Source: Macrostomum lignano (taxonomy: Eukaryota). From it: a DNA stretch of 58,655 bases. A program made the translations under genes and the position numbers. Below are positions 3,001 through 50,845 of the stretch, piece by piece. How positions within the stretch are numbered: position 1 is the stretch's first letter; every line of letters starts with the position of its first letter. Location of the stretch: assembly GCA_002269645.1 (NCBI GenBank), contig NIVC01004132.1, positions 1 through 58,655 on the forward strand, written 5' to 3'. The notes beneath the pieces are model-generated. The model had not been told where the DNA came from. It saw only the letters and a list, made by a program, of their open reading frames with translations, and ran no database searches.

Positions 3001-6000
3001 TGGCGTGATGAACTCCTGCGGAGGGTTGCCATGGTTATTGATAGGCTTTACCGTGTAGGTTGGTGCGATTCTTAAGACAGTAATACGGATTTAGGGCGAT
3101 TCTCAGGGTGGATTTGGGGCGATTCTCAGGGTGGATTTGGGGCGATTCTCAGGGTGGATTTGGGGCGATTCTCAGGGTAGATTTGCGGCGATTCTCAGGG
3201 TAGATTAGAGGCGATTCTCAGGGTGGATTAGTGGCGATTCTCAGGGTGGATTAGTGGCGATTCTCAGGGTGGATTAGTGGCGATTCTCAGGGTGGATTAG
3301 TGGCGATTCTCAGGGTGGATTAGTGGCGATTCTCGGGGTGGATTAGAGGCGATTCTTAAAGTGGATTAGTGGCGATTCTCAGGGTGGATTAGTGGCGATT
3401 CTCAGGGTGGATTAGTGGCGATTCTCGGGGTGGATTAGAGGCGATTCTTAAAGTGGATTAGTGGCGATTCTCAGGGTGGATTAGTGGCGATTCTCAGGGT
3501 GGATTAGTGGCGATTCTCAGGGTGGATTAGTGGCGATTCTCGGAGTGGATTAGGGAAGATACTAAAGGATGGATTAGGGATGATTCCTAAAACAGATTAG
3601 GGCCATTGTCAGGTTGGATTTAAGGGCTATTTCTAAGCGAGTGTAAATGCGGTTCAATACCGAATGAAAGTCAAACTACTCACCTGCAAGAAGTCGTGAC
3701 GCAGCAGCTCGGGCCAGAAGAAGTGAATAAAGTTAATGATGAGTCCTTTGATATGCGAGCCGTCCTGGTCCTGATCGGTCATGATCATAATATGCCGATA
3801 CCTGAGCGACTTCAAATCTTCCACTGTGTTGTACTTTTTGCCGTACTGCAAGTTCACAGCGTCCTGAATAACTTTGATCTCCTTGTTATTCATTAGCTGG
3901 TCCTTGCTAGCCTCGCGAACATTCAATAGTTTACCTTTCAGCGGGAACACGCCGAATCTGTCTCGGCCGTCCGGCAGGGAGCTGGCACCGGCCACGGCCA
4001 GGGACTTGGCCGAATCGCCCTCAGTCAGGATCAGAACGCACTCGCCTTTGCCAGCATTGTTAGCGTGGTCGAGTTTCTCGTGGAACGTCTTCTTACTGGC
4101 TTTGGTTCGCTGATTCAGAGCTTTGTTGGTCTTGAAGTCGGCGTACTCAAGGACGCACCGGACAATACCGCAGTCTTCGGACAGAAGCTTCTTAAAGAAT
4201 TTGTCGTCCAATTCTGGCGCGCTGCCAAATTTCTTCGCTTGCAAAGTCATGAACTCTTTAGTTTGCGAGTCGAAGCTGGGATTCTCAATTAGACAGTTGC
4301 AGAAGATCCACAGGTGATTTTTCACAAATGCCGGCTTGATGGAGCCTTTCAGATTCTTCTTGTCGGCTTTGCACTTGCCGTCGATTGCGTCGACAAGGCG
4401 TTTGAGCAGCAGGTCGCAGACAAAGTCAACGTGACGGCCGCCTTTGGTGGTGGCGATTGAGTTCACAAAGCTGACCTGTGGAGAAGTTGAAGGTTTCAAA
4501 TACAAGTGGATCTCCGATATATATCGAAATTTATTTTCTTATTTTAGACAATTTTTCACGAAAGTCCCGGGTTCGATTCTGTGAATTGTGAACTCGCGCG
4601 TGCATCTTAACGAAAAAACTCTGCATGGATGTACACTGCGTACCTGCGTGCCCAGTAGCCAGCAGCATAATTTACCGTGTAATAATAACATTCTAAAGGC
4701 GATAATTAATATCTAATTAAACAGGTGCAACCATCTTCCACTTGGCCAGAAGTAATTATTACCGGCCTAATTAGAGGCGCGCACCCACCTCACGCTCAGA
4801 GGTAATAATTACCCTAATTAAAGCGGCGCACTCACCTGACGCTCAGAGGTGATAATTACCCTAATTAAAGCGGCGCACTCACCTGACGCTCAGAGGTGAT
4901 AATTAAAACCTAATTAGAGTAGCGCAACCACCTAACACTCACGGGTAATAATTACCCTAATTAAAGTGGCGCAACCACCTCAAGCTCAGAGGTGATAATT
5001 AGCCAATTATAGAGGCCTACCCACCTCACGCTCAGAGGTGATAATTACCCTAATTAGAGTAGCGCAACCATCTCACGCTCACAGGTAATAATTACCCTAA
5101 TTAGAGTGGCGCAACCAACTCAAGCTTAGAGGTGATAATTAGCCAATTAATAGAGGCCTACCCACCTCATGCTCAGAGGTGATAATTACCCTAATTAAAG
5201 TAGCGTACTCACCTCATCCTCGGGTGATAATTAGGGTGCCCCTAATCACAAATCACAAACTAAATTACATTAACTTAGTATTAATGCTCAAAACTTTACC
5301 TGCTTAAATCCGTCGTTGCTCAGACAAACAGCCAGCTCCCATCGGCCACTTTTAATAATAGCCACCTCTTTGTCCTCCTTCTCTGTGAGGTACAATCTGT
5401 AATAGTCCTTAAACGAAGTGACCGGCAGTTTCTCGCCGTTGAGAAACACTCGAACGCCGCTGCAAGTGCCGGCAATGTCGAAAGCCCGACGGCTGAACAA
5501 GGCGATCGTGTCGTCATCGAGTTCGGTCATGCCGAATTTCGTGAGGTCCGGCTTAAAGCTCACCTGCAAAGATTGCGATATAACTGATTAATTTGACTGA
5601 CAACGGACATTGTTTAATACCTTCATAATTTGCGATCGATAGGAGATCATCAATAAACTACAGGAGATTAAGAGACTATCCGATGCAAACGGTGCCTTGG
5701 CTAAGAAGCGTCACTGAGTCACTTGCGTCGCTCCATAGTCGTTGCGGGTAACACAGGTAAAAATGGGAAAGAAGTGACTTTATAAGTCGCCTAAGAATCA
5801 GTTTGAGGCGTCTGCGGCCGTAGAGTCATATCTGGGTCGCGCTAGAGTCGCTGTAGAATCGCTGAGTGGCGTCTAAAGCGCATCTGCATCACTTTATAAA
5901 TTGGAATCAAATTTTGCATTTTTAAAACTCTATTTAGTCTACTTGTAGTTAGTAGAAAGTTAAGCGCCTGAAATTGAGTTTGAAGTCCCTTTTTAGCGAC

Positions 6001-7292
6001 TCAACAGTCGCCTCTCCGTCGCATTACAGTCGTTTCAGTCGCTTAAAAGTCACAAAATTCGCCCCAGCCTCGTTATAGATTCACTAGTGAGTTGTTTGCA
6101 ATGATTCTTTAGTGATTATTATCACGGTATCGTTTTTAAACAGGCTACTAAAACTTTCAAGGGACTTTGAAGAGATTATCATGAGATTATGTGTGACTAT
6201 TCAGTGAGATTATCGAAACATTAGTAAGACTTAGAATGGATTATTATCGAAACTTAAAAAATAGACTTTCAAATGAAACTTATTCAGATATCTGGGACTT
6301 TGAAGAGAGATTATCCTGATATCTGTGAGACTTTGAAGGGAGATTATCCAGATATCTGTGAGACTGAAGAGAGATTATCCAGATATCTGTGAGACTTTGA
6401 AGAGAGATTATCCAGATATCTGTGAGACTTTGAAGGGAGATTATCCAGATATCTGTGAGACTGAAGGGAGATTATCCAGATACCTGTGAGACTTTGAAGG
6501 GAGATTATCCAGATATCTGTGAGACTTTGAATGAAGATTAATCCAGATACATGTGAGAATTTGAACGGAGATTATCCAGAGAGCAGAAAATGCTTATCAA
6601 AGGTCATAAATTTGACAGGTGGATTAACCTACCTTAGTATAATCTTCGGCGGCATTTTTCATAATCTTAGCTTCGCCAGCTTTGCCCATATTGTCAGTCC
6701 AAGTCTGTTGGAACCGTTTTCCGGACTCTTTGCACGAGGTCTCAACAGTAAATTGGCGACTGTAGACGTTGCACAGTTTCGCTCCGTAGCCGTTTCGACC
6801 TCCCGTAGTTTTCTTCTCGCTGTCATTAAAATTGCTAGACGTCAATAAGTGACCAAAGATTAGCGTTGGAACATAGAGCTTCTCTTTCTTGTGCTCAACT
6901 ACTGGGATGCCTTTGCCATTGTTCCACACTTCGATGAGATTGTCCTCCTTGCTGATGGTGATGCGAATGCAGGACATGCCGGGATCGCGCTGTTTATTAT
7001 CCGCCGCATTGACCAGCACTTCGTCGAAGATTTTATAGAGGCCAGGCACGAACGTGATCTCGCGTTCAATCATGCGTTTAGCGGTGGAATCGTAGACCCA
7101 CATGTTCTGGCGGACACTTTCTACTGAGCCAATATAGGTGTCCGGCCGGAGCAATATGTGCTCCAGCTGCGTCTTCTTCTGGTAGATTTTTTCTACTGAC
7201 ACTCGCTGCTTGCCGCTGCCGCCACCAAACCGATTGGCTGCATCGCTAAGTGGCGAAGCCAGCGGGCCAAGATTGTCTGTTTCGCTGCTCAT
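1..7292 (-). CDS. TOP2: DNA topoisomerase II, 7 exons in window (7292-6633, 5563-5300, 4475-3684, 3015-2503, 2025-1736, 1223-655, 436-<1); C-terminus beyond the window; three apparent 1-nt deletions near 864, 428 and 201
   Basis: GHKL motifs EIYQKKTQLEHILLRPDTYIGS, EVLVNAADN, GGRNGYGAKL; TOPRIM LILTEGDSA, PLKGKLLNVR, IMTDQDQDGSHIKGL; DGLKPGQRKV; YHHGEASL; catalytic AAARYI; NGADGIGTGWST; DFDYILRMPLWSLT. All junctions are GT-AG with matching phases. Confidence 0.97.
1268..1603. repeat. 23-bp minisatellite (AATAACCTTGTTGCTAGGGCGCT) in TOP2 intron 5
   Basis: About 14 tandem units read directly. Confidence 0.9.
2058..2470. repeat. 20-bp minisatellite (TATCTACCTGTCTTAGTGTC) in TOP2 intron 4
   Basis: About 20 tandem units; sense strand contains CAG|GTAGA. 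Confidence 0.92.
3088..3553. repeat. 22-bp minisatellite (GATTCTCAGGGTGGATTAGTGGC-like) in TOP2 intron 3
   Basis: About 20 tandem units read directly. Confidence 0.92.
4760..5235. repeat. Degenerate ~45-60-bp tandem repeat in TOP2 intron 2
   Basis: Recurring CTCACCT..CGCTCAGAGGTGATAATTACCCTAATTA units. Confidence 0.8.
6290..6585. repeat. ~30-32-bp tandem repeat (GAGATTATCCAGATATCTGTGAGACTTTGAAG) in TOP2 intron 1
   Basis: About 9 units read directly. Confidence 0.88.
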
Positions 7293-19735: not shown

Positions 19736-21084
19736 CGAGGGGCATCCCAAAAGTCCGTTCAGTCACTGAATAAAAACGCAACAGTGCAACAGGAAAGTTT
19801 AAAAACTTCATAGGCCTTCAAAATAACTTCCATTGGCCGCAATCACACGCTGCCAGCGCTCTGGTAGTTTCTTGACTCCGTCAGTAGCGCCAGAATCACA
19901 CAGGTGTTGAAGCACCTGGACGATGATGCTGAAGAGTTCGTCCAGGCAGTAGTAGCGGTGGCCTCGTAGCTGATTTTTTAGCTTTGGAAAGAGATCGAAG
20001 TCACAAGGACTCAGGTCGGGAGAATAGGCGGGATGAGGTAGGACTTCCCAGCCGTAGTTTGCCAGCAGCTCCTTGACAATCCAACCAGTGTGGGGGCTTG
20101 CGTTGTCATGCAGCAATAGGGGTCCATTCGAAAGTGTCAGTGCTCGCTTCTTCTGGAGCGCTGGTCGAAGATGGTAAATAATAAAGCGTCTGTAATACCG
20201 ATTTACAGTCTGTCCCTCAGGCACTCTGTGTACAAGAACCATACCAAAGTAATCATAGCAGACGATGAGCATCATCTTCTTGGACCCCTTGCTGCGCCTC
20301 AGGACTTCTGGCCGGGAAGACTGTGCGGCAGAACGGTCGCGCTGCTGCCATTCAGAATTCTGCGACTTTAGATTCGGTTCATATGAGCAGGCCCACGTCT
20401 CATCTAAAGTCACAATTCTCTGAAGAAATTTCTCTCCCTCCTTCCGAAAGCGCTGCAGCAGCTGCTGGGCAACAGTTCTCCGACGATCCTTCTGTGCATC
20501 ATCCAGGTGGTGAGGCACCCATCGAGCTGTGACCTTCTGCAAGCCCAGATCTTCTGTTAAAATTCGGTGCACACTAGTAGATGGAATTCCAGTCAGTTCC
20601 TCCAGTTCTTCACAAGTCCACCGACGATCGATTTCGAGGATGCCCTTCACCAGCTCAACGTTGGCATCTGATCGAGACTCCCTTGGCCGTCCTGATTGCT
20701 GGCCATCCTCGATGTCGAATTGCCCATCTCTGAAGCGCGTATACCAATTGTACACAGATCTCTCAGTAAAGGCACGGTCTTTGAATGCTTCAACAAGTTG
20801 CCGGTGAACTTGCGCAGCTTTTGTTCCTCGCAAAAATTCGGCTTTGATGTACAAGCGTTGCTCGATATTGTTAACGTCCTCCATCAGTTAATCAGATCGG
20901 CCAAGTTTAAAATCACTAGACTGGTTAATTTATTATAACACTTCGAATACTCGATATATAAGCTCAAAATTTTATAAAGTTAAAGAGGGGTTGCTCTAGT
21001 AAATAACTGTGAGTGGTTGAGCTCTTTACTCGTCGTTTATGGTAAAAACGGCACGTACTGAACGGACTTTTGGGATGCCCCTCG
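19736..21084 (-). mobile_element. Full-length mariner transposon, 1349 bp
   Basis: Perfect 28-bp TIR CGAGGGGCATCCCAAAAGTCCGTTCAGT; TA TSD on both sides; single ORF. Confidence 0.97.
19808..20884 (-). CDS. Mariner transposase, DD34D, 358 aa, uninterrupted
   Basis: HTH N-terminus, WVPHHL, TLDETW, HDNASPH, YSPDLSPCD; 34 residues between the second and third Asp (counted). Confidence 0.96.
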   Translation of the reverse strand: MEDVNNIEQRLYIKAEFLRGTKAAQVHRQLVEAFKDRAFTERSVYNWYTRFRDGQFDIEDGQQSGRPRESRSDANVELVKGILEIDRRWTCEELEELTGIPSTSVHRILTEDLGLQKVTARWVPHHLDDAQKDRRRTVAQQLLQRFRKEGEKFLQRIVTLDETWACSYEPNLKSQNSEWQQRDRSAAQSSRPEVLRRSKGSKKMMLIVCYDYFGMVLVHRVPEGQTVNRYYRRFIIYHLRPALQKKRALTLSNGPLLLHDNASPHTGWIVKELLANYGWEVLPHPAYSPDLSPCDFDLFPKLKNQLRGHRYYCLDELFSIIVQVLQHLCDSGATDGVKKLPERWQRVIAANGSYFEGL

Positions 21085-21139: not shown

Positions 21140-21495
21140 CATGGCTTCATCTGAGGTTTCTATGGCGCTTCACCTGGGGTTTTCATGGCGCTTCACTTGA
21201 GGTTTCCATGATGGCGCTTCACCTGCATGAGGTTTTCATGGCGCTTCACCTGCATGAGGTTTTCATGGCGCTTCACCTACATGAGGTTTTCATGGCGCTT
21301 CACCTGCATGAGGTTTCCATGGCGCTTCACCTGCATGAGGTTTCCATGGCGCTTCACCTGCATGAGGTTTCCATGGCGCTTCACCTGCATGAGGTTTTCA
21401 TGGCGCTTCACCTGCATGAGGTTTCCAGGGCTTTACCTGAGGTTTATATGGGATTATACCTAAGGTTTATATGGGATTATACCTGAGGTTTATAT
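21140..21495. repeat. 27-bp minisatellite (CATGAGGTTTCCATGGCGCTTCACCTG) with 21-23-bp degenerate flanking units
   Basis: Tandem units read directly; related to arrays at 28.6-30.0 kb. Confidence 0.9.
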
Positions 21496-21673
21496 GGGGC
21501 CAAACGAATTGTGTTTCCGTGGCGCGATATATACAAGAACCCGAGAGTCCTTAGGTTTTAGATATACCTGAGATTTGATTCGCTGCTAGCTATACTAAGT
21601 GATATATCCAATCATTTGATCATTCATGATATTCTGCGCTATCTTTGGTGACAGCTTAGACAAGAATAGATAG

Positions 21674-22848: not shown

Positions 22849-25230
22849 TCTCCCCCCGATCACCAGCGGTCACCAGCTGTTGGATCTGGAACAGCTGTGC
22901 ACCCCGAGAGACTTCCTCACTGGCGTCGCTGGTGATGGTGACGATCGTGTCCACGCTCGTGTGTCAATACCGATGGATTGCAGATTGCAGCCTTCAACCC
23001 CCGGAAAGCTTGCTCGCATTCGGTTGTCCACTCGTCCACTCGAACTCGGCGTCGCTCTTGAGCAGATGTCGATCAGAGGCAAATTGGGTTTGGGCACGAG
23101 GAAGTTGGCCGATCCCCAGGAACGCCTGCAGCTCCTTCTTCCTCCAGTCGCTTCAGCAGAGACTTGAGTCGGTGCTCAGTCTCCGTTGCTCGGTGAACAA
23201 TGATGTCATCCAAGAAGTGCTCCATTCCGGGCAGGATACTACCAGGTCGTCCAGCATCCTCTCTGTAGGTTCCAGAAAATTTCGTCAATCTGTCATTTGG
23301 TAATTTAAAATGAAAGAAAAAATCGAGATCGACTTACTTTGATGCCTTGCTGAAATAAGCCTACTGTGTCGAATAGGAACTTTACTTGTCGTTCAAGCGA
23401 AGTGTTTCTAAGAAAACCCACATACTTATAACGTCAAAATAAAAAATTAAGAACTAAACGGGAAGTGTAAAATTAAAAGGAAAAAGCATAATTAATTTAT
23501 AATGAATATTATATATGTAATCTGCAGATGATCAAAACAATCTATTTAACACGGTTCCCATTAGTATTCGAATCAAGGAATACTCAAGTTGACTATTAAA
23601 GTGATTTCCTAGAAACAATTAACTTTAAACACAACAAGTGAAATCTCCTTTCGATTCTGACCTATTTTAGAAGTAAATTTGATTCAATTTTACTTTAAAA
23701 TCACGCACAAATCTTCTTTGACGAAAAGTTTTTTGACGAAATGTCCGTCCACTCCTCCGGAAGGCCGCAGGCGCTGACGCTTGACCAACGGCACCTGGCG
23801 GTGTCGGTACAGGCCCTGCAAGGTACGTTATGAGTCGCATGATGACTCGTGCAGCCGCATTTGCCTGTAGCCCGCCATGAGGTCGATCTTGGAGAAGGCG
23901 CGGCCGCTGGCTGTCTTGATATTCGTCAAGATCTCGCCCAACGGAGGCATCCCGTGCTGGTCAATGACGAGCGACTTGTGCACATCGATGCAGACTCGAA
24001 TGTTGCCGTTCTTCTTGTTGGCGACCACCAGGTTGGAAATCCAGGGGCTGGAGTTCACTCGCTCGATGATGCCCGCTGCCTCCAGCTGGTCAAGCTCCTC
24101 GCCGATCTGTTGCTGCTTTGCTAGAGGCAGGTGGCACAGCGGCTGCTGTACTTTGCTTTGCAAAGTGTTGATCCTCGGCTGGTTTACCGCTCCTTTGCAC
24201 AGCTCGATTGAGCCGTTGAAGACCGCTAAGAATTCCTTTGCGATATCGACACTGGCAATTCCGGTATCGGCACCTGGAAGCTGCCCAGCTTTTCCACCAG
24301 GTCGCGGCCGATGAAGTTCTCGCCCGATCTCGTGATTTGGAAGACGTGTTGCAGCTGCCAACTCCGGTGCTGGATGTCCATCTGCTTGCCGACGTACAAT
24401 CGTAGATGCACCGCCAAAGGTCTCAGTTGAAGGTCGCTAAGGCTTTTTGCCGTGAGGATGTTGAGCAGCTGGCCACCTTAGCACCGCAGTCGACCACCAA
24501 GCTATCGATCTTTCGAGCATTGCCCAGTCGCAGCTCGACTCGGATCTCGTCGTTACCATGCACCGAGTAGATTGTAACTGACTCCTCCGCGCCGCAACTG
24601 CAGAGCCTTGCTGCGGCAACATCAACTGAAATGATTGAGCTTGCCGCAGTTTTTTTTCACTTTTGTCATGCCGCCGCGGGGGTCGTGACTCCGGCTGCAT
24701 CGCTGACAGGGGCCGGCGGCAATTGATGCTGTCACTTCTGTAGCTTCTTTCTAGCCGGAGCGCCGCGGTGGCCTCGGGGCCCAGCATCATGCACAGCCTG
24801 GACGTTTCCCGATGAGCTGGCAGCCGCCATCGCTTTGCTGCCAGCCGCTGCCTCCCTAATAGCAGTCGCGATCACAATGGCCTAGCTAGTCCAAAGTCAA
24901 CCTGGCAGCGTCCTCCGTCAGTAGACGCTCGCGAATCCGAGGGCTGCTGGTCTTCTGTGCCAGCTGGTCGCGAATCAACTCGTCACTCAGAGCTCCATAG
25001 TTGCAGGTGGCTGATGGCTCTTGCAGTGACAAAGTGACTAAGGTGACTGCGTCCTCTCCAGGCAACTGCTGTCGCTCCTGTTCACATCACGTTCACATTC
25101 GATGCATTTCGAGCCCTGGCGATCTGCTGCCCCTCGAAGAAGAGCAGGTGCAGCAGCAGGTTGCGGCACACCGTTGCAAGAGAGAGAACGTACTACTGCT
25201 TTTGAATACTCATCGCTGGTCTGCGACACT
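22849..25230 (-). mobile_element. Decayed, internally deleted Ty3/Gypsy retrotransposon (gag, protease, RT; RNase H and integrase absent)
   Basis: gag IRDQL..RERLL.E..LTLD, degenerate CCHC knuckles near 24620-24720, protease VVDCGA near 24490, RT PWISNLVV..KKNGNIRVCID, FSKIDLMAGYRQM, FLDD; PPT GGGGGGAGA followed by TG at 22848; stops and frameshifts; paired LTRs not found. Confidence 0.9.
23268..23753. mobile_element. AT-rich insertion splitting the Gypsy RT, probably a MULE-like MITE
   Basis: RT reads APAAFRR on one side and MLDDL on the other; both ends begin GG and share inverted ATTTCGTCAA; TSD degenerate. Confidence 0.55.
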
Positions 25231-25257
25231 GTCGGGGTTTATTTTAGAAAATAAGCA

Positions 25258-25500
25258 GCCGTCGGAAGAGAAGGCCATAGGCGAACGTATGCTGGAGGAG
25301 ACTCGATCTGTCCTATTCCAATCTGGACGAGCCCAATGTGTCGGAGAATGACGTCAACAACACTAAGATGTGGCTCAGGGTTAAGCTCGGTTTATATGTG
25401 CTTTATCTAATTTATCTAATACTCGATTTGGCGTTGTCTTTGTGATTCAATTGAAAAAATCTCAGCTGACCGCACTCTCAACTCTGAATCGTGAATACTG
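25258..25500 (+). pseudogene. 5'-truncated, frameshifted diverged paralog of the 66-aa secreted peptide gene
   Basis: EEKAIGERMLEET then SNLDEPNVS..LRVK aligns with EEKAMAERVLEETLSNIDESSMS..FRVR; downstream CTGACCGCACTCTCAACTCTGA matches the 3' flank CTGACCGGACTCTGAACTGTGA; signal peptide missing next to the Gypsy. Confidence 0.7.
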
Positions 25501-26321
25501 AACGTGGAATTATCAGACTCCGAGAAGTTAAGAAATTGAAGTACTGGAAGCAAAGAGTGAAAGTCGGCTATATCGAGAAGATTCGTCGACGGCTGCTCTG
25601 CATACAGAAGATTTTGCCATCAGCGAAAAGAGCTTCAAGCTGCATTGGATAGTGCATGCTGAGCAGACCAAGTTGCCGATCGGAAGGAACCGAGAACAGA
25701 GCCGCACAACGACCTGTTTGAGGGAGTTGCACGTGAGTTGCTCTACAAAACTGCAAGTTTATTGTTTGTGTACAGGAACTGAGGCATCCCACAAGAGATC
25801 ACTACCGACTGAGACCCAAAGTTGCTTCGTCTTCAAGGAGTCCGAGCTCTCTGTAGTTCTTAGGGAATTTTCCGGAGCAAAGTGTCTAAGACGTGTCAAC
25901 AAAGAGAACTGGCGGAGTAGCATTCCACCCAGTCTGGAATAGTGTACCGTGTTCAGTGCTCAGTGCTTTAGAAACTCAATTGCATTTAATTCTGAAAGAT
26001 CTTGTTAAACTTTACTGTGTATGCAAGAAAGAGTAAAATAGAAAATGCGGAGAAAACTCTTGAGAGTTGCCTGTTTGACTGATAGCTGTCATCAAACAAA
26101 CAAATTCTGCATCATATTCATAGGCATGCAAGACTGCAGTCTCTGCTCCGCTCTTCTCGCGTAAAAGCAGAAAAGTCAAACAACGTCGCTCCTTGGACCG
26201 GAAACACGTGCCAATCCGAAGCGCATAAATTCGCAACTACCAGCTACTCAAGAATTCAATTTCAAATTCGACTTAATCTACACACAGATCCAAGACTCGA
26301 CTCGACTGGACTCAAGCAATC

Positions 26322-26522
26322 ATGAAGTGGCAGCTCGCTCTCGGACTTTTGCTGTGCGCCGCCCTGGTCGTCGCCGTGCCCACCCAGGAGGAGAAGGCCA
26401 TGGCCGAACGCGTGCTGGAGGAGACTCTGTCCAACATTGACGAGTCCAGCATGTCGAAGGAGAAGGCACTGGACCTGAAGAAGAAGATCTTCAGGGTTAG
26501 GGCCAGGATCCATATTGGTTAG
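26322..26522 (+). CDS. Unknown 66-aa secreted peptide precursor, copy A
   Basis: ATG start, signal peptide MKWQLALGLLLCAALVVA, GC3-rich codons like host exons, CATAAA about 95 bp upstream, ORF preserved in the inverted copy. Confidence 0.75.
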   Translation: MKWQLALGLLLCAALVVAVPTQEEKAMAERVLEETLSNIDESSMSKEKALDLKKKIFRVRARIHIG

Positions 26523-27869
26523 ATCTGAGACTGGCAACTGACCGGACTCTGAACTGTGACTGTAAACCGCCCAAATCTCAATGTAGAGGGTTTAAATCTT
26601 CTAATATCTACCGATCAGTTTTGCCAAATATATCAGCAGCAAAACAATATATCTTTGTCTTGTTTTTTCTGGAATACCGGACTGTATGTTGTGAATATCT
26701 CTTCATAATGAAGAAAGGAAGAATTTTGAACCAAAGGATTCAAAGGAAGAAATTTAGCAATCTGCCGTCCGTCAATTTTTTTTCGCAAACTAGACTGGTA
26801 AATTTTACGTATGCACACTTTTACAGTGCATTAATTCGCACCCGCCTACAACGCTGAGGCAGCTCAGCGGGAGACGCATCTGATTCGCATCGAACTACGA
26901 GAACCTAAAATATGAGCTTCGATTCCATGCGCAGCTTCTTTTTTGTTGCTCATAGACGAAAATCATCGGCAACGCCTGCCAGCAAGAGGTGTCGTGGTTC
27001 TTGAGACGGGCGGAGCCGTTTCACAGTGATCAGTCCCGTCATCTGATTCATACAGATGCTAGCTGTTCCATACAGATGTTATATACTTCACTTTCTGTTA
27101 TTTATTGAACGTCTTCAAACTTTTTACATTCATGTTATGCATGCAATTTATTCGGCTACACTTTACTCTGGACTGCAGCCTTGTACGTTTTGCCGTTTTT
27201 GTACTTATTTTGTGTTCTTTGTAGTATATTGTACGTATAGCTAACGGTATGACTTTAGCGGCATATTGTGGCCATATTTTAATCATATACGTATATGAAA
27301 CGTATATGAAACGTATTAAAATCAATTAATCATTGATTTTAATTTTCATGATTACAAGCATTTCCACTCGATTTCTGGTGTGTAGCAGTTTTGTGAAAAT
27401 CTGACTCCAGGAGATGAAACTGCAGGCAAGCTCCTACATGTAAATAAGCTAGAGATATCAAGAAGACTTATACGTAGAGTTGATCTCTAAGACTTTTTTC
27501 GCTTGAGTCGCCAGTTTTCTGTCCTTAGTATTGAGCAGTCCCTACCCAAATCTTTCTCATTTTGTCAACCTCACACACGCCAACGGACGTGACGTTTTAC
27601 ATGTATTACTTTAAGTAATAAATATCTACGCGGAGATGGGAACGCTCAGGTGAGATTCTATGAATAAAATATGTGTCAATGTTTTAATTTCTAATGTTTC
27701 ATAAAGGAAAACAAGACGAAGCGTACAATGGGTTGCTGAAACAATGTTTTGCTGCTAATATATTTGGCAAAACTGGATCGGCAAATAGATATGGAAGAAG
27801 ACCCTCTACATTGAGATTTGGGCGGTTTACAGTCACAGTTCAGAGTCCGGTCAGTTGCCAGTCTCAGAT

Positions 27870-28070
27870 CTAACCAATATGGATCCTGGCCCTAACCCTG
27901 AAGATCTTCTTCTTCAGGTCCAGTGCCTTCTCCTCCGACATGCTGGACTCGTCAATGTTGGACAGAGTCTCCTCCAGCACGCGTTCGGCCATGGCCTTCT
28001 CCTCCTGGGTGGGCACGGCGACGACCAGGGCGGCGCACAGCAAAAGTCCGAGAGCGAGCTGCCACTTCAT
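27870..28070 (-). CDS. Unknown 66-aa secreted peptide precursor, copy B (K46E relative to copy A)
   Basis: Same ORF; ATGTCGAAG vs ATGTCGGAG is the only amino-acid difference. Confidence 0.75.
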   Translation of the reverse strand: MKWQLALGLLLCAALVVAVPTQEEKAMAERVLEETLSNIDESSMSEEKALDLKKKIFRVRARIHIG

Positions 28071-28569
28071 GATTGCTTGAGTCCAGTCGAGTCGAGTCTT
28101 GGATCTGTGTGTAGATTAAGTCGAATTTGAAATTGAATTCTTGAGTAGCTGGTAGTTGCGAATTTATGCGCTTCGGATTGGTACGTGTTTCCGGTCCAAG
28201 GAGCGACGTTGTTTGACTTTTCTGCTTTTCCGTGAGAAGAGCGGAGCAGAGACTGCAGTCTTGCATGCCTATGAATATGATGCAGAATTTGTTTGTTTGA
28301 TGACAGCTATCAGTCAAACAGGCAACTCTCAAGAGTTTTCTGCATGCAAGTGTATTCAATTCAGTGCGGTCTATTTGACTGCTCGCGTGCACAGTAAAGT
28401 TTAATAAGAACTTTCAGAAAATTCAGTGCAATTCAGTTTCTAAAGCACTGAGCACTGATCACGGTGCACTATTAGAGACTCGCTGGAATGCTACTCCGCC
28501 TGCCCTTGTTGTTGACACTTCTCAGACACTTTACTCTGGGAAACTCAGCTAGTCCTCCATGGATATTCC

Positions 28570-29075
28570 ATTGCTTTCCATTGAGGCTTCCATGGCTTTA
28601 CCTGAGGTTTTCATGGCTTTACCTGAGGTTTCTATAGACATTTACCTGAGGTTTTCATGGCTCTTTACCTGAGATTTCCATGGCCCTTTACCTGAGGCTT
28701 CCATGGCTTTACCTGAGGTTTCCATGGCTTTACCTGAGGTTTCTATAGACCTTTACCTGAGGTTTTCATGGCTTTACCTGAGGTTTCTATAGACATTTAC
28801 CTGAGGTTTTCATGGCTCTTTACCTGAGGTTTCCATGGCCCTTTACCTGAGGCTTCCATGGCTTTACCTGAGGTTTCCATGGCTTTTTACTTGAGGTTTT
28901 CATGGCCCTTTACCTGAGATTTACGTGGCGCTTTACCTGAGGTTTTCATGGCCCTTTACCTGAGGTTTACGTGGCGCTTTACCTGAGGTTTCTATGACCT
29001 TGACTGAAGTTTCCATAGCTTAACCTGAGATTTCCATGGCGCTTTGCCTGAGGTTTCCATGGGGCTATACCTGAG
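28570..29075 (+). repeat. 21-23-bp minisatellite (TTTACCTGAGGTTTCCATGGCCC)
   Basis: About 22 units read directly. Confidence 0.9.
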
Positions 29076-29349: not shown

Positions 29350-30010
29350 CCTCAGGTAAAGGGCCATGGAAACCTCAGGTAAAGGGCCATGGAAACCTCA
29401 GGTAAAGGGCCATGGAAACCTCAGGTAAAGGGCCATGGAAACCTCAGGTAAAGGGCCATGGAAACCTCAGGTAAAGGGCCATGGAAACCTCAGGTAAAGG
29501 GCCACGTAAACCTCAGGTAAATGGCCATGAAAACCTCAGGTAAAGGGCCATGAAAACCTCAGGTAAAGGGCCACGTAAACCTCAGGTAAAGGGCCACGTA
29601 AACCTCAGGTAAAGGGCCACGTAAACCTCAGGTAAAGGGCCATGGAAACCTCAGGTAAAGGGCCATGGAAGCCTCAGGTAAAGAGAAATGGAAACCTCAG
29701 GTAAAGAGAAATGGAAACCTCAGGTAAAGAGAAATGGAAACCTCAGGTAAAGAGAAATGGAAACCTCAGGTAAAGGGCCATGGAAACCTCAGGTAAAGAA
29801 AAATGGAAACCTCAGGTAAAGGGCCATGAAAAATTCAGGTAAAAAGCCATGGAAACCTTAGGTAAAGGGCCATGGAAACCTCAGGTAAAGGGCCATGGAA
29901 ACTTCAGGTAAAAATCCATGGAAACTTCAGGTAAAAATCCATGGAAACTTCAGGTAAAAATCCATGGAAACTTCAGGTAAAAATCCATGGAAACCTCAGG
30001 TAAGGCCATA
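29350..30010 (-). repeat. Same 22-bp minisatellite in inverted orientation (CCTCAGGTAAAGGGCCATGGAAA)
   Basis: About 30 units, reverse complement of the 28570-29075 array. Confidence 0.92.
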
Positions 30011-31040
30011 GAAACTCAAGTATAGCATTTCTTGACAAACACATTGACTCATTGAAAAATTTACACACCTCATTTATCTCAGAGATAGCAAAAATCTGTC
30101 TATAATTCGTTTACTACTTTCATATCTACAGATAGACCTATCTGACTGATTTTATACCCCTACCCCTGAGGACATACAGAGCTGATTGGATGGATGGCTA
30201 AAAGCAAAAAGGAGATTTTTCAAAACCATATAAGCCACCGGTATATGTCTGGTTTATACTATTCATGCAATAGATTTATTCATCATTTGTCGTATCAACA
30301 GTCGATGTTTATCTAAGCTGCCGGATTAGCCTAATACATCAAGTTCGGCGCCAAAAATGTTGACGTATCGGCTAATTGCAAAGCAACATTTGTCTGGAAA
30401 GTTCTTTAGAGTCAGATTATGAATTATGACTATGTGTTAGATTGAATTGAGAGATTTCATGCTAACCACGGACTAATCATCGCACCTCATCATCTAATTA
30501 TCACATCTCATCATCTAATTATCGCACCTCATTATCTAATAATTATATATATTTTACAGTATTAGAATCAGCTGTGAAGGTTTTTAAAGACGCTTATACG
30601 AGTAGATAGAGCAAGGACTTCTAGACTAACAGGACGTAAAACTCAAAGATCGTGCAATTTTTTGGAGGCCACGATTTCCTGGAAAAAATACACTGCGAAG
30701 ATAGGAAAAAATCTGTTTTTCGTCACAAAATCTGTGATTGTATTTGATCTGGGGCAGTGAAGACTACCATTCTTTTAATTTAACATGCACAACATGTTAC
30801 TCTATTATATTTTCATATAGCTGTGTAATGAAGTTTTAATTTTCATATTGTTTTCACTTTATTTCATAAGCCCAAAGTTGCAAACTCACAAGTTGTCTAG
30901 AAGTCCTTGAGATAGAGTTTGATTAGTAGAGGCCGGGGCTGTGTGTATTTTAAGCGACATAGGCACACAACCGGCGAGAGGCATTACTGCCCATTCCGCC
31001 GACTCCTCTGAGCAGGCACACAAGCGCGTGGATACGTACG

Positions 31041-39124: not shown

Positions 39125-41127
39125 ACAGACAGGCAGACAGACAGGCAGGCAGGCAGGCAGGCAGGCAGACAGACAGGCAGGCAGACAGACAGGCAGACAG
39201 GCAGGCAGGCAGACAGGCAGGCAGACAGACAGACAGGCAGACAGGCAGGCAGGCAGGCAGACAGACAGGCAGGCAGGCAGGCAGACAGACAGACAGGCAG
39301 GCAGGCAGGCAGGCAGGCAGCAAGACAGGCAGGCAGGCAGGCAGGCAGACAGACAGGCAGGCAGGCAGACAGACAGACAGGCAGGCAGGCAGGCAGACAG
39401 ACAGGCAGGCAGGCAGACAGACAGGCAAACAGGCAGGCAGACAGACAGGCAGACAGGCAGGCAGGCAGGCAGGCAGACAGTCAGACAGGCAGGCAGGCAG
39501 GCAGACAGGCAGACAGACAGGCAGGCAGACAGACAGGCAGGCAGACAGACAGGCAGACAGGCAGGCAGGCAGGCAGGCAGGCAGACAGACAGTCAGACAC
39601 AGAAAGTTCAAACCTGTACAATCAATTCAAATCCCGCAGACAGTCTATCCAATCAGCACAGTGCCATATCCGGACATCAAATTTCATATCGTTATTCAAC
39701 GCAGAACGCTCTACTATCTGTTTAATATCATATTTCCATGCCTGTGGCTAACTGTGCTCAGCTTGCTCAGCTTCTGGTTGCCGCCAGATTCTGGGGAGAA
39801 AATTACATTGGGCATCACTGTGCTGCTAGCCTTCTCAGTGTTCATGCTGCTTATTGCCGAGAATATGCCTGCGACTAGCGAGTTCGTGCCTCTCATTGGT
39901 AAGTGGCAAGGATCGCTGTGGGGGTAGGGGTGATCTGGAGGAGGGGTGCTGTGGGGGAAGGGTGCGTTGGGGGAATGCTGTGGGAGGAATGGGTGCTGTG
40001 GTGGGAAGGGGTGCTGTGGGGGGAAGGGGTGCTGTGGGGGGAAGTGGTGCTGTGGGGGGAAGGGGTGCTGTGGGGGGAAGGGTGCTTTGGGGGGGGATGC
40101 TGTGGGGGGAAGGGGTGCTGTGGGGGAAGGGGTGTTGTGGGGGAGGGGTGCTTTTGGGGGAAGGGGTGCTGTGGGGGAAGGGGTGCAGTTGTGGGGGGAA
40201 GGGGTGTTGTGGGGGCAAGGGTGCTGCGGGGGGAAGGGGTGCTGTGGGGGAAGGGGTGCTGTGGGGGAAGGGGTGTTGTGGGGGCAAGGGTGCTGTGGGG
40301 GGAATGGGTGCTGTGGGGCAAGGGTGCTGTGGGGGAAGGGGTGCTGTGGGGGAAGGGGTGCTGTGGGGGGGGTGCAAGGGTGCTGTGGGGGAAGGGGTGG
40401 TGTAAGGGGGAAGGGGTGCTGTGGGGGATCGGGTGCTCTAGGGAAAAAAGGGGTGCCGTTAGGGGGGGGGGAGGGGTGCACATGTGATTAACAGACGTGT
40501 TAACACTTTCTGCGAGCTTTTTGATATAGCAGATATGTACCTCATGCTACTTTACAATTGTACGGCACTAATGATAGCTCCTCTGTACGCATTGCAGGAA
40601 TCTACCTAACCGTCACAATGTCCACCACATCGCTGTCTATAGTCCTGACCGTGTTCGTGCTCCACCTGCACCACATCGGCCCGAATGACAAGCCGGTGCC
40701 TCGCTGGCTGCGCCGGTTTCTATTCAAGCGCCTGGCGCCACTGCTCTGCATGACCTCAGTGGCGCGCTATCAGCGCAAGGCGCGTCGCAAGCGTCGAGAG
40801 TTGCGCCAACTCGACGATTCAGATCAGCCTGCAGTTGATGACATCACTGACGAGGCGGAAGACGAGTTAGAGACAGCGACGTGCACCACCACAGCGTCGA
40901 CATTCAGGCAGCAGCATCAATTTCGACAGTCCATCCGTTTGGATCGGCATATCCGGCGACTGATGCGACAGCAACTCGACGATGAAGCGGCCCAGCTGTT
41001 GATCAGCGACTGGCGCACAGTCGCCTACGTCATGGACCGGCTGCTATTCTGGCTGTTCTTAACTGCCGCGTTCACGTCAACTCTGATCATACTGGTTGTC
41101 ATGCCGCTGTTTAAGAAAGTTCTTTGA
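31505..41127 (+). CDS. Nicotinic acetylcholine receptor subunit, non-alpha type, 475 aa; exons 31505-31711, 33630-33674, 35118-35227, 37875-38072, 38585-38663, 39640-39898, 40598-41127
   Basis: Signal peptide, [20 protein letters not shown], Cys-loop [23 protein letters not shown]1-M3 with [18 protein letters not shown]4 MDRLLFWLF; exons sum to 1428 nt in frame. Confidence 0.96.
31880..33140. repeat. 20-bp minisatellite (GTGACAGGGAACACAGTGGA), nAChR intron 1
   Basis: About 60 units. Confidence 0.95.
33716..34684. repeat. (TTAG)n microsatellite, nAChR intron 2
   Basis: About 970 bp with CTAG variants. Confidence 0.97.
35222..35862. repeat. 20-bp minisatellite (AACAGGTAAACTGGAGTGAG) starting at the exon 3 splice donor
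   Basis: About 30 units; first unit spans the exon-intron junction. Confidence 0.95.
36195..36400. repeat. 20-bp minisatellite (AGAGACAGGGCCGCCCACCA)
   Basis: About 10 units. Confidence 0.9.
36444..36752. mobile_element. 309-bp long-TIR MITE, CA...TG termini, 8-bp TSD
   Basis: About 110-bp inverted arms starting CACGGAGGAAAGAATAGAATGGAGTGC; TSD GGTCTAAC at 36436-36443 and 36753-36760. Confidence 0.92.
37277..37700. repeat. (GACA)n microsatellite, nAChR intron 3
   Basis: Read directly. Confidence 0.95.
38120..38490. repeat. 16-bp minisatellite (CGAACTTGTGAATCTT), nAChR intron 4
   Basis: About 23 units with a variant block at the 3' end. Confidence 0.92.
38790..39600. repeat. Mixed (GACA)/(GGCA)n microsatellite, nAChR intron 5
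   Basis: Read directly. Confidence 0.95.
39930..40430. repeat. G-rich ~17-18-bp minisatellite (GGGTGCTGTGGGGGGAA), nAChR intron 6
   Basis: About 28 units with long G runs. Confidence 0.92.
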
Positions 41128-46741: not shown

Positions 46742-49700
46742 CTACCTCAGCTGACTGCCATTGAACTGATCAGCACTGGCCGAGTTGGCCGCGGCTAATG
46801 CGGCAGCCCGACGCTTCTCAGCATTCGAATAGGCGCTAAAAAAGATGTCGCACAGCTGCCTGAGACGGACAGTTCGATCAGTCAGCTGCTGAGGCTGCTG
46901 CTGCTGGGGCTTCTGCAGATGCGGATACCAGCGCAGCATGGACAGATGCCGGTCCCGGCTAACGGAGTGCAGAAAGTGGAAGCAGTAGTGCAGCACGCAC
47001 TCATCCTTCTGCATCCGGTCTGGCAGGCGGTGGCCTGCGAGTGTTGGGCGTCGATGTTATTCAATAATATTATAGGGCCTGTATATAGGCAGCCAGTTTT
47101 AGTCTAGGGGGCTGCGTGCACCCTGACGCACTTTAGGCGACTTTGTAAAGAAACTTTTATCCAGTCAAAAAGGCCATTATTACACACCATTTAGCGGCTA
47201 CACCAGCAGATTTCTATAACTGATAAGAGCAGGCATACTGCTATGAGATTTTATTAAACTAATTAAAAGTTTATGACTAAGTTATAGACTCGTCTATTTA
47301 TCTTATCTGATTGTCCATTCCACTGCCCCTCGCCACCAGTAATCAATGTACATCATACTCTCTGCCAAAGTGACCAACCAGTTCACCCACCCCATCTCTC
47401 GTCCAATCAAATCAAATTTGAAAGTGTGAAAGAATTGGCCGCTCAAAAGTGTGTTAAAATAACCGGAAAAGTGTGGCAAATTGGCACAATGTGTTAAGTG
47501 CAGTCATACACGCAGGCACACACTCACACAGGAGTGTACAGCGGCCCTAACTTTATTTTATCGTTAGGAATGTACACTTCACTGTGCCTTGGGGGTTGGC
47601 CCTCTAACTGGGCGTTAATTGCACGAGCAGAGCCAAGCCGAGATTCCACTTTTGCTCTAAATTAACAGTAGGAGTACAAAGTCATTTTTTGTTGCGCAAC
47701 TTCTCAAACAAGAATTAAGTTGCCAGCCCTTCGGACCCTTAAGATATTCATTCAATTCAACGATTCTACCAGGTTGGCTTTTTTACATAAGCGCCAGTGT
47801 ATTCAATACACCCATGTGCACTAACCAGCACTGCGCCTCACTGAAGCCTTTCAAAGCCTCTAAACTTCATCAGTACGTCGACCACACGTGTCTGCATCAG
47901 CTCTGAATTTGTTGGTCACCGGCCTTAAGCTAGGCGGAGCTTCTCGACCTTAAGCAGGTGGCACCAGGTGACTATGGACACACTCTAATGTGACTGCACT
48001 GGGAATCGAGCCCGGACCGCTGGTACATCAGAGCGCCGCGCTAGACCACTAGGCTAAGAAACACTAGAATGTCTATGGCCGACAACTTACCAAAGAGGAA
48101 CCAATCATAAGCCAGGGTCAAATAGAGCAACTGCATTGCGCTCAGACTGGCACGGCACAGGCCTTCAGACCAGAGCAGGCACCTCAGCAGGCTGATAAAC
48201 ATTGGCGTCCTGTCCCAGCCGCTGACGCAGTGCAGCATAATGCCGCCATCGTCTGGGAACTCAACCAGATAGCCTAACAGCAGGCGCATGTAGTTAGCGG
48301 TCAGCCTGGTCAGGTCCCAGTCTCGATAGCGTTGCCAGTCGATGTCTACAGCGCACAATGGCAGCTGGTCATCGAATCTTAACTGGGCGGTGACTGACGG
48401 GTTGTGCCAAGCGAAATGCACGCCGGACATCGATAGGCCGTGACCGATGGACCAGACGCGGAAGAATTCGCAGCCGGGATAAGGAATCACGCATAGCTTG
48501 TAGTCTCTGTAATGAGGGAGTTCAGTGAGGGCAATTAAGTTAGGAGGGGAGTGCATGGGAATTTTCTTTATGTACAGTCTGGGGTGGGTGCGGGGATTTC
48601 CCTACTGTACATTCTAAGTTGGATGGGGATTTCCCTACTATATAGTCTAGGGTGGGTGTGGGGATTTCCCTACTGTACAGTCTGGGGTGGGTGTGGGGAT
48701 TTCCCTACTGTACAGTCTGGGGTGGGTGTGGGGATTTCCCTACTGTACACTCTGGGATGGGTGGGGGGATTTCCCTACTGAACAGTCTGGGATGGGTGGG
48801 GGGATTTCCCTACTGAACAGTCTAGGGTGGGTGTGGGGATTTCCCTACTGTACAGTCTGGGGTGGGTGTGGGGATTTCCCTACTGTACAGTCTGGGATGG
48901 GTGGGGGGATTTCCCTACTGAACAGTCTGGGATGGGTGGGGGATTTCCCTACTGTACAGTCTGGGATGGGTGGGGAGATTTCCCTACTGTACAGTCTGGG
49001 TGGGTGTGGGGATTTCCCTACTGTACAGTCTGGGATGGGTGGGGGGATTTCCCTACTGAACAGTCTGGGATGGGTGGGGGATTTCCCTACTGAACAGTCT
49101 AGGGTGGGTGTGGGGATTTCCCTACTGTACAGTCTGGGGTGGGTGTGGGGATTTCCCTACTGTACAGTCTGGGATGGGTGGGGGGATTTCCCTACTGAAC
49201 AGTCTGGGATGGGTGGGGGATTTCCCTACTGTACAGTCTGGGATGGGTGGGGAGATTTCCCTACTGTACAGTCTGGGTGGGTGTGGGGATTTCCCTACTG
49301 TACAGTCTGGGTGGGTGTAGGGATTTCCCTACAGTACAGTCTGGGTGGGTGGGGGGATTTCCCTACTGTACAGTCTGGGGTGTGTGGGGATTTTTTTCCT
49401 ACTGAACAGTCTGGTGTAGGTGGGGGGATTTCCCTACTGTAAAGTCTGGGGTGGGTGGGGATTTCCCAATAAAGCTATTTCGCCTGTCAATGACATTAAA
49501 GTCACCAATACCAACTGTCTGTAATAGCACACAACACATTCAAAATAGAAACCACAAAGACTTACTTGTATCGTCCTCTCTTATCAATCTTCTCCGTAGA
49601 CGATAACGGCAAGGGCACTCTGTACTTGTAGAACTTAGCCTCCACTGTTAAGTCGACAATTTGTCTGACACGCAAGCAGTCTAATAGGGCCATGTCCTTG

Positions 49701-50845
49701 CCCCTGGTCCGGTCAAAGAAGCTATTGCTGCTAATACCGGTTGCTGAGGCAACCGATTCGCTGTCAGCCGCCTCTGACTCGCCGGAGGTTGGCGCAATAG
49801 AATTGGGCGTGGATTTTCTACCGACGCTCATAGAAGAAAACCAGGACGACACCACCCCGATGGCGCTTCTGTGTTGGCAGAGGATGGTTTGGGAATGCTC
49901 TCTGTGATTCCCCACTCTGCTCTCTGTGATAACCCACTCTGCTCTCTGTTATTTCCCACTCTGCTCTCTGTGATTCCCCACTCTGCTCTCTGTGATTCCC
50001 CACTCTGCTCTCTGTGATTCCCCAGTCTGCTCGCTGTGATTCCCCACTCAGCTCTCTGATTCCCCACTCTGCTCTGTCTGATTCCCCACTCTGCTCTCGC
50101 TGATTCCCCACTCAGCTCTCTGTGATTCCTCACTCAGCTCTCTCTGATTCCTCGCTCAGCTCTCTCTGATTCCTCACTCAGCTCTCTGATTCCCCACTCT
50201 GCTCTGTCTGATTCCCCACTCTGCTCTGTCTGATTCCCCACTCTGCTCTCGCTGATTCCCCACTCAGCTCTCTGTGATTCCCCACTCAGCTATCTCTGAT
50301 TCTCCACTCTGTTCTCTCTGATTCTCTCACTCTGCTCTCTCTGATTCCCTCCTCAACACTGCACAATCCTACCTAGAATAAGCTTCAGGCCAAGCGCTCA
50401 AGGCTGCAGACCGGCACACCAGTTTGCCTTCAAACATGAGCGCAGGCGCCGGGAAGCGGCCTCGGACCCGGGCCTTACTAGCAGATTTGCACACGGCATA
50501 GAAGTCATCCGGATATGCTAACTCCTGCTCAGGCCGGCGCCTCAAACAGCTGCTAGGCAAAAACAAATATGGCGGATAAGTGTCGCACAACTGGCCATCG
50601 GTATTGTCTAAACAGCCGTGCAGTTTGTAGTCCAACTCAATCAGTTCCCGACAATTGCTGCTAGCTAGAAGTGCAGCGGCAGCTTCGGAGCCTCCCGAAC
50701 CAGACAATGGCGATGAGTTTGGCAAGTCAGTAAGCAGACGGCTGGTGTAAGCTTTCTCAAGCATGCAACCCAACAGTCTGTGCAGTTCCGACTCTGTGAC
50801 GTCATCGACTGGTTGGGAACGGGAGCGACGCCCAATATCGACCAT
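46742..50845 (-). CDS. MTMR14: Myotubularin-related protein 14 (Jumpy)-type phosphatase, ~494 aa; exons 50845-50373, 49868-49566, 48506-48091, 47034-46742
   Basis: ARVRGRFPAP, VCRSAALSAW, RGKDMALL, IPYPGCEFF, catalytic HCVSGWDRTP (CX5R intact), LAYDWFLFG, RLRQL..IFFSAYS; phases consistent; AATAAA shortly after the stop. Confidence 0.93.
47500..48054 (-). mobile_element. Second SINE copy in MTMR14 intron 3, with ~340 bp extra sequence between head and body
   Basis: Head 47993-48054 and body 47500-47648 match 31041-31273. Confidence 0.78.
48560..49465. repeat. ~32-34-bp minisatellite (GGGATTTCCCTACTGTACAGTCTGGGATGGGTGG), MTMR14 intron 2
   Basis: About 27 units. Confidence 0.94.
49905..50345. 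repeat. 20-22-bp minisatellite (CTGATTCCCCACTCTGCTCT), MTMR14 intron 1
   Basis: About 20 units. Confidence 0.93.

Follow-up and report, generated by a model that had tools for sequence, protein, structure and literature searches.

What do two short, convergent open reading frames (ORFs) in the flatworm Macrostomum lignano encode, and what is the palindrome in which they lie? The ORFs are on contig NIVC01004132.1 of assembly GCA_002269645.1, which we analysed over its whole length of 58,655 nucleotides and call the window. Each has 66 codons, and their positions, 26322-26522(+) and 27870-28070(-), confirm the two inverted copies of a secreted peptide gene that a first inspection of the bare sequence (the original prediction) had reported. 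The product of both is MKWQLALGLLLCAALVVAVPTQEEKAMAERVLEETLSNIDESSMS[K/E]EKALDLKKKIFRVRARIHIG; the sole difference, K46E, comes from a non-synonymous A/G difference at 26457. From their sequences, the two appear to be convergent single-exon genes of a clustered multigene family, so far seen in M. lignano and in one contig from the Sequence Read Archive (SRA). Several suggestions can be made regarding what the family does. The one that we favour, at a probability of about one half, is a host-defence-type or lytic role: the peptides would act against microbes in general, or would lyse prey or the microbes that the worm ingests.

The layout of the product is that of a secreted precursor. MK is followed by a hydrophobic core of 15 residues and then by V-V-A before V-P, which fits the n/h/c layout of a signal peptide and the -3/-1 rule. 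After it come a propiece with a net charge of -5 or -7, a run of three lysines and a tail, IFRVRARIHI, that is closed by a glycine. The original prediction had the charge of the propiece right, at -5, and its composition wrong: residues 19-52 hold nine Asp/Glu and four Lys/Arg, not seven and two. The tail carries a net charge of +3 plus one His; at 180 degrees it has a hydrophobic moment of 1.23, compared with 0.30 at 100 degrees.

A first protein search gave 15 relatives, all of them M. lignano 'hypothetical proteins'. We then searched 1.84 billion representatives with a HMMER profile and also ran profile word-index searches. The family now has at least 43 distinct prepropeptides, and all are from GenBank M. 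lignano bar one, which is encoded at 541-813 of a Logan contig of 929 nt assembled from an SRA run (SRR31628392_42504, our locus L011). This contig is the only homologue other than the M. lignano proteins that the profile and word-index searches returned. The tail of its product is a Pro/Arg repeat (FLRVRLPRVRMPRVRLPRVRLPRLRVRFRWSKK) without terminal Gly. Behind its stop codon (814-929) comes a motif of some 26 nt that is repeated, and upstream of the gene lies a block similar to the promoter-like one described below.

Different parts of the precursor evolve differently. The signal peptide is nearly invariant (MKWQLALGLLLCAALAVA) and has the lowest ratio of non-synonymous to synonymous differences (pN/pS), 0.22, as against 0.90 for the propiece and 0.67 for the tail, and synonymous divergence itself climbs along the gene from 0.11 to 0.37. 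Propieces are acidic throughout the family, with net charges from -4 to -14, and are 32-38 residues long; the exception is member P0010, whose propiece reaches 56 residues through an internal duplication of 21. The basic site is KK or KKK (EK in one subfamily), and KK is invariant among close paralogs. The precursor ends in G or GK in 36 of the 41 complete members, and in the close subfamily each of the 20 genomic ORFs has Gly followed directly by the stop codon. Propiece charge and tail charge are inversely related (Spearman rho -0.79, among members that are related and hence not independent). The originally proposed order of signal peptide, acidic propiece, basic site and cationic tail ending in Gly is thus strongly supported by the family, through the constrained signal peptide, the invariant KK, the G or GK end and the charge relation.

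Some family members show peculiarities of their own. P0034 consists of two prepro units in tandem, and the P0008 model links two paralogs by a splice that spans 13.7 kb. P0015 bears the UniRef name 'SERPIN domain-containing protein', yet it is a 73-residue member of this family.

Is this really a gene, and is it on this strand? We consider it very probable that we are dealing with a real family of secreted-peptide genes. We base the call of the sense strand on the precursor architecture, the base composition by codon position, the orientation of the conserved blocks on either side and the annotation. In the sense ORF, the GC contents of codon positions 1, 2 and 3 are 0.57/0.35/0.83, an exaggerated form of what bona fide genes of the contig show. 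In the overlapping antisense ORF they are 0.73/0.40/0.51, which is not coding-like. That antisense ORF (26262-26537(-), 91 codons when listed with bacterial start codons) is longer than the gene itself and is open in every paralog; most probably it results simply from the high GC of the gene at third codon positions. The sense ORF is beyond chance because 20 of the 20 genomic paralog ORFs examined are intact, at 62-72 codons, and end in Gly and stop. The ATG, the signal peptide and the stop after Gly are kept in paralogs as distant as about 42-50% identity to the window peptide, and a frameshifted pseudogene nearby gives a local example of what decay looks like.

As for expression, the + copy has a GenBank gene model, and the family models, named BOX15_Mlig, are all annotated "hypothetical". 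The M. lignano annotation was built from mapped transcripts only; novel transcripts below an RPKM (reads per kilobase per million mapped reads) of 0.5 were dropped and those overlapping repeats were excluded (PMC5730564). Transcription of the family genes is supported indirectly by this method. The original prediction had named three outcomes that would speak against it: no transcript, an ORF that is not conserved, and a sequence that is the antisense strand of a transposon. What we find instead are family models, that of the + copy included, that come from transcript-only annotation; an ORF that is kept in many paralogs; and no transposon feature.

One may still ask whether there is no functional gene here at all, and the ORF either arose by chance or is the opposite strand of a repeat or a transposon. 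The contig is repeat-rich, with a mariner-like transposase 5.4 kb away, and the antisense frames are open in all paralogs. Frame-wise pN/pS is uninformative: it fails to single out the sense frame (0.77, versus 0.62-1.53 in the other frames), and evolution at the residue level is almost neutral outside the signal peptide. We dropped dN/dS (non-synonymous to synonymous substitution rates) as a test of the coding strand since all six frames gave 0.6-1.5, and used codon-position GC in its place. Moreover, we saw no gene model for the - copy of its own in the GenBank look-up. Against these points stands the fact that the architecture is kept in 43 distinct proteins, far down the range of identity given above, and that only the sense frame fits the codon-position GC. 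The annotation is transcript-based and repeat-filtered, the copies sit in a few gene clusters and are not dispersed (only three in the 58.7-kb window), and Pfam scans found the unit and the sequence next to it free of transposon domains. That no functional gene exists here is therefore hardly credible.

The tails are hypervariable and rich in Arg and His, from 6 to more than 30 residues long and with net charges from 0 to +14; the extremes are illustrated by FIHIHF and WLLRRIRIRWRRVLRVASRVYRIYRYLPI. One group, to which the window peptide belongs, has 6, 8 or 10 residues in which hydrophobic residues alternate strictly with Arg or His (FIHIHF, FVRVRVRL, IFRVRVHI, WLRVRARVRI, IFRVRARIHI). Length differences among short tails come in steps of two codons, so that the alternation stays in register. 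GFHVHFH and FHLHLP are further tails of the family. Long tails have 18-32 residues, are Arg-rich and look helical, and there are also a Pro/Arg repeat (P0018) and a tail with a Cys pair (P0020). The hydrophobic moment is maximal at 160-180 degrees in 14 of 14 short tails and at about 105 degrees in three long ones.

A host-defence role is favoured because a conserved prepro region is joined to strongly cationic and hypervariable tails that fall into several structural types, a pattern well known from families of antimicrobial peptide genes. In such a scheme, each gene would be transcribed from a promoter of its own, with E-box, CCAAT and TATA-like elements. The 66-residue product would enter the secretory pathway by means of its 18-residue signal peptide, which would be cleaved after Ala18. 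The charge compensation seen in the family suggests that the 34-residue acidic propiece neutralises the cationic tail in transit. A cut after KKK and conversion of Gly66 by peptidylglycine alpha-amidating monooxygenase would then yield IFRVRARIHI-amide, for which we compute a monoisotopic mass M of 1278.815 (1336.820 for the Gly-extended acid). As an extended strand, this 10-mer would expose one cationic face of Arg and His and one hydrophobic face, and might be membrane-active or self-assembling.

Besides the points already raised about the coding strand, several observations weigh against this scheme. AlphaFold2, run on the family alignment, gave an all-helical model with no strand; it is of low confidence (predicted local distance difference test score, pLDDT, 66), and we set it aside as structural evidence for that reason. 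Taken singly, the shuffle tests of the hydrophobic moment give weak results, with P values of about 0.01-0.19, on peptides that are homologous and hence not independent. The transcript models P0004 and P0012 begin upstream of the TATA-like motif, which weakens the promoter reading. Finally, flatworms themselves provide a warning. The helminth defence molecules FhHDM-1 and Sm16, reported to be trematode-specific, are small secreted proteins that have a signal peptide and carry, at the C-terminus, a cationic amphipathic peptide that is freed by proteolysis (PMC3093369, PMC3708846, PMC7373315). They are cathelicidin-like and immunomodulatory, without antimicrobial activity (PMC3708846). Given this example, architecture alone would not be a proof of antimicrobial activity. 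The two groups are alike in being small secreted flatworm proteins that resemble host-defence peptides. In a comparison by description only, the helminth defence molecules differ from our family in a helical tail of about 34 residues and in having no terminal Gly or amidation.

The design of signal peptide, spacer, basic site, short peptide and Gly would equally match a precursor of a neuropeptide or peptide hormone, whose amidated tail (RI-, RL-, RF-, HI- or HF-amide) would act on a receptor as FMRFamide-like peptides do. Flatworms make amidated neuropeptides, and several paralogs would end in RF-amide, for instance FVRVHVRF-G and IFRVHVRF-G. Flatworms and other spiralians have FMRFamide-like and other R-hydrophobic-amide neuropeptides, which are released at basic sites as short peptides with an Arg-Phe-, Arg-Ile- or Arg-Leu-amide end; in their genes the mature peptide is conserved, and copy number is low. 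Here the usual conservation is reversed: the signal peptide and KK are conserved, and the presumed active peptide varies over the whole range of length and charge described above. No region is more divergent than the tail, an RF-G end occurs in only a few paralogs, and the window peptide would end in HI-amide. The family is large, with dozens of clustered paralogs, unlike FMRFamide-like genes. The long tails also contain RR and RRRRR runs, which neuroendocrine convertases would be expected to cut. A neuropeptide function thus seems unlikely to us.

Another suggestion is a gland product outside immunity, such as a peptide of the seminal fluid or prostate, an adhesive, a component of mucus or rhabdites, or a self-assembling material whose strands form cross-beta assemblies. 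Reproductive and glandular secretions typically contain fast-evolving, tandemly duplicated small secreted peptides, and the present family would match this description. The tails FIHIHF, GFHVHFH and FHLHLP also bring to mind heptapeptides of the Ac-LHLHLRL-amide type, which form amyloid fibrils (PMC10008563). What speaks against such a product is that the long, very cationic tails of helical type and the Pro/Arg tails suit lytic peptides better than structural ones. The gene ids that we tried were also absent from supplements on reproduction-related and on neoblast and germline genes of M. lignano, which is weak evidence, as short ORFs were possibly filtered there. We regard a gland product as rather improbable, though it deserves to be kept in mind.

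A more daring reading may be mentioned as a long shot. The short (hydrophobic-Arg/His)n-amides of 6-10 residues could be natural, gene-encoded, self-assembling beta-strand amphiphiles that act by cross-beta assembly rather than by lysis of membranes as monomers. In nature they would then correspond to such designed peptides as IRIKIRIK-amide and LHLHLRL-amide, a catalytic amyloid that binds Zn. Possible forms would be a granule- or rod-like secretion matrix, a gel switched by pH or metal, or a surface-active fibril, with length tuned in two-residue steps by gene duplication.

How does the family compare with known systems under the host-defence reading? Amphibian preprodermaseptins and preprotemporins and honeybee prepromelittin are precursors of about 60-70 residues. 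Their signal peptide is conserved and is followed by an acidic propiece, a basic site and a short cationic peptide with Gly or Gly-Lys as amide donor. They also share with our family a conserved prepro region and a mature peptide that is hypervariable across a multigene family. Unlike in those precursors, the window peptide is a strictly alternating 10-mer and not an amphipathic helix, the phylum is a different one, and there is no detectable homology in a comparison made through Pfam. Closer to the alternating tails is the synthetic 8-mer IRIKIRIK (IK8L), which is reported to be broadly bactericidal and to form beta-sheets (PMC4330034). FVRVRVRL, IFRVRVRI and IFRVRARIHI likewise have 8-10 residues in which I, V or F alternates with a cationic residue. 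They differ in being gene-encoded, in using Arg and His instead of Arg and Lys, and in having an activity that is only predicted, whereas IRIKIRIK was designed and its activity measured. Acetyl-LHLHLRL-amide and acetyl-IHIHIQI-amide are designed heptapeptides that form catalytic amyloids and need Zn2+ and high concentration (PMC10008563). Their alternation of hydrophobic residues with His and their C-terminal amide have counterparts in FIHIHF-(G), GFHVHFH-(G) and FHLHLP-(GK), and the window tail ends in RIHI. Unlike these N-acetylated peptides, the window peptide has a single His.

Among described families and solved structures we found no relatives. None of 15 members matched the Pfam families of antimicrobial peptide precursors at E up to 0.1, and a profile search of the PDB gave nothing below E 0.15. 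Of all Pfam hits only PF22991 ('Gag1-like lock domain') recurred, and we rejected it as a short match to the acidic helix of the propiece, of which it covers some 17 residues. With 14-18 bits it stays below the cut-off of 27, except in P0010, whose duplication of the matched segment lifts the score to 27.1 bits. In the literature library searched, we found no paper that mentions the family sequences or gene ids, and none on M. lignano antimicrobial peptides or neuropeptides that is relevant to the family. The family gene ids that we tried are absent from supplementary tables of the M. lignano studies examined. Response genes are listed in a review of planarian immunity, but antimicrobial peptides encoded by genes are not described there (PMC7958881). 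We therefore regard the family as undescribed, though its precursor architecture belongs to a well-known kind.

We now turn to the palindrome (Table 1). The two genes are arranged tail to tail, with 1347 nt from stop to stop. The core of the inverted repeat pairs 26051-26591 with 28341-27801, 541 nt with four mismatches (99.3% identity). Beyond it, identity falls abruptly, to 70-88% outward as far as about 25850 and about 28545, and these weakly similar flanks account for the outer limits set in the original prediction. Inward of the core there is weak similarity of about 74% over some 50 nt. Such a profile indicates an older inverted duplication, in which the core of promoter, coding sequence and proximal 3' untranslated region (3'UTR) was later homogenised by gene conversion, because 99.3% identity with sharp borders sits directly beside flanks of 70-88%.

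Contig NIVC01001113.1 (L002) is 99.1% identical to the window over 10.5 kb and has the same palindrome, with the same four differences between the arms and a spacer identical to that of the window. Because a second contig carries the same structure, the palindrome is not an artefact of assembly. On this comparison, the arm differences, K46E included, are older than the split of the two contigs, and since both contigs have the four differences in common, there has been no gene conversion since they diverged.

Elsewhere in the family, six genes lie within 20 kb in mixed orientation (L003/L006), others form tandem pairs (L004/L007) and others are singletons (L008-L010); most family genes are outside near-identical inverted pairs. 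Because convergent, divergent and tandem neighbours all occur, the palindromic layout is, as far as the genomic arrangement tells, one outcome of local duplication and no special device. This bears on a suggestion of a different kind, that the palindrome is a hairpin-RNA or small-RNA locus in which transcripts that read through into the antisense of the other copy would fold into a stem of 541 bp and regulate the family. In favour of it, the complementarity of the convergent arms is 99%, the loop between them measures 1.2 kb, and one family model, P0030, joins antisense-like to sense sequence. However, the gene in each arm is complete and has conserved blocks of its own both upstream and downstream, near-identical inverted pairs are not the rule among the family genes, and Rfam has no family that matches the palindrome region. 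We consider a hairpin function very improbable.

Table 1. Features of the palindrome and of the adjacent pseudogene in the window (CDS, coding sequence)
Feature	Position	Strand	Remarks
Decayed third family copy (pseudogene)	~25218..25390	+	Without start codon and signal peptide
Outer flank of arm 1	25850..26050	+	70-88% identity to outer flank of arm 2
Arm 1 core	26051..26591	+	Promoter region, 5'UTR, CDS and first 69 nt of 3'UTR; sharp borders on both sides
Distal upstream block GCTGTCATCAAACAAAC	26085..26101	+	Partly kept among paralogs
Proximal promoter-like block CGGAAACACGTGCCAATCCGAAGCGCATAAATTC	26199..26232	+	E-box CACGTG, CCAAT, TATA-like CATAAAT; putative promoter
Copy 1 signal peptide MKWQLALGLLLCAALVVA	26322..26375	+	18 codons; cleavage site predicted by the -3/-1 rule
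Copy 1 acidic propiece	26376..26477	+	Residues 19-52, 34 aa, 9 D/E, 4 K/R; K46 at 26457
KKK, presumed basic processing site	26478..26486	+	K54 and K55 invariant in close-paralog alignment; putative cleavage
Tail IFRVRARIHI and terminal Gly66 (presumed amide donor)	26487..26519	+	Stop codon 26520-26522
3'UTR block GACTCTGAACTGTGACT	26545..26561	+	Conserved among paralogs
Block TTTTGCCAAATATA	26619..26632	+	AATATA at 26627-26632; paralog similarity fades just after
Spacer between cores	26592..27800	.	1209 nt; about 50 nt at each end align weakly
Copy 2 TTTTGCCAAATATA block	27759..27772	-	
Arm 2 core	27801..28341	-	Counterpart of arm 1 core
Copy 2 CDS	27870..28070	-	66 codons and stop; E46 in place of K46
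Copy 2 signal peptide	28070-28017	-	
Copy 2 propiece	28016-27915	-	
Copy 2 KKK	27914-27906	-	
Copy 2 tail	27905-27876	-	
Copy 2 terminal Gly	27875-27873	-	
Copy 2 promoter-like block	28160..28193	-	E-box CACGTA, matching mismatch at 26210
Outer flank of arm 2	28342..28545	-	Pairs with outer flank of arm 1

Conserved blocks accompany the genes on both sides. The promoter-like block, CGGAAACACGTGCCAATCC..GCATAAATTC, is kept upstream of 12 of the 12 aligned paralogs, ends 89 nt before the ATG and has a weaker form in the Logan contig. Its E-box reads CACGTG in ten of these paralogs, CATGTG in L003_1097+ and CACGTA in the - copy of the window (28177-28187(-), compared with 26205-26215(+)). The CACGTA change is also present in the second contig, and because of it the expression levels of the two window copies may be unequal. 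Downstream of copy 1, the AATATA at 26627-26632 is likely a variant poly(A) signal; AATAAA is absent from the + strand in the region after this copy until 27617.

A search of the window for family copies gave three in all, the pseudogene counted, and no family sequence in the spacer. In the pseudogene, a frameshift splits '..EEKAIGERMLEET' from 'SNLDEPNVSENDVNNTKMWLRVKLG', no stop codon follows the Gly, and the promoter is also missing. An ORF just upstream of it, 23828-24361(-), looks by eye like a remnant of a reverse transcriptase; Pfam gave no match for it even at E up to 1. On the other side, arm 2 is directly adjoined by a 23-nt minisatellite (TGAGGTTTCCATGGCCCTTTACC) in two arrays that are inverted to each other (28566-29075 and 29350-30022). 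A related 27/23-nt array lies at 21152-21498, 4.7 kb upstream of arm 1, and similar minisatellite arrays lie next to the palindrome in L002.

The remainder of the window fits an animal genome. Exons of topoisomerase II occupy 17-7292(-), separated by introns that consist almost wholly of minisatellite arrays with units of 22-47 nt. An uninterrupted ORF of 358 codons at 19808-20884(-) encodes the mariner/Tc1-like transposase, with matches to HTH_48 and DDE_3. Much of the contig between 31.8 and 50.3 kb is tandem repeat. A transmembrane exon of a ligand-gated ion channel is found at 40558-41127(+) (Neur_chan_memb, E 3e-19), and two exons with weak similarity to myotubularin-like phosphatases and an HCVSGWDRT motif at 48041-48556(-) and 50369-50845(-). 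Neither the channel nor the phosphatase-like exons have an evident link to the neighbouring peptide genes. Short interstitial runs of CCCTAA/CCTAAC, of the TTAGGG type and telomere-like, occur at 53524-54122.

What would the family mean for the animal? Free-living flatworms are regeneration models and inhabit microbe-rich sediment. If the host-defence reading is correct, M. lignano, a transgenic flatworm model, would have a large and tractable repertoire of effectors. The family would then amount, in addition, to an experiment of nature on the design of peptides, in which one conserved delivery cassette has been combined with tails of beta type, helical type, Pro/Arg-repeat type and disulfide type. 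With 6-10 residues, the strictly alternating tails match the shortest antimicrobial or self-assembling peptides made synthetically, and they are cheap to synthesise. Should the peptides prove to be neuropeptidergic or reproductive instead, they would still form an undescribed, fast-diversifying peptide family, with tandem and inverted duplication and gene conversion among its genes.

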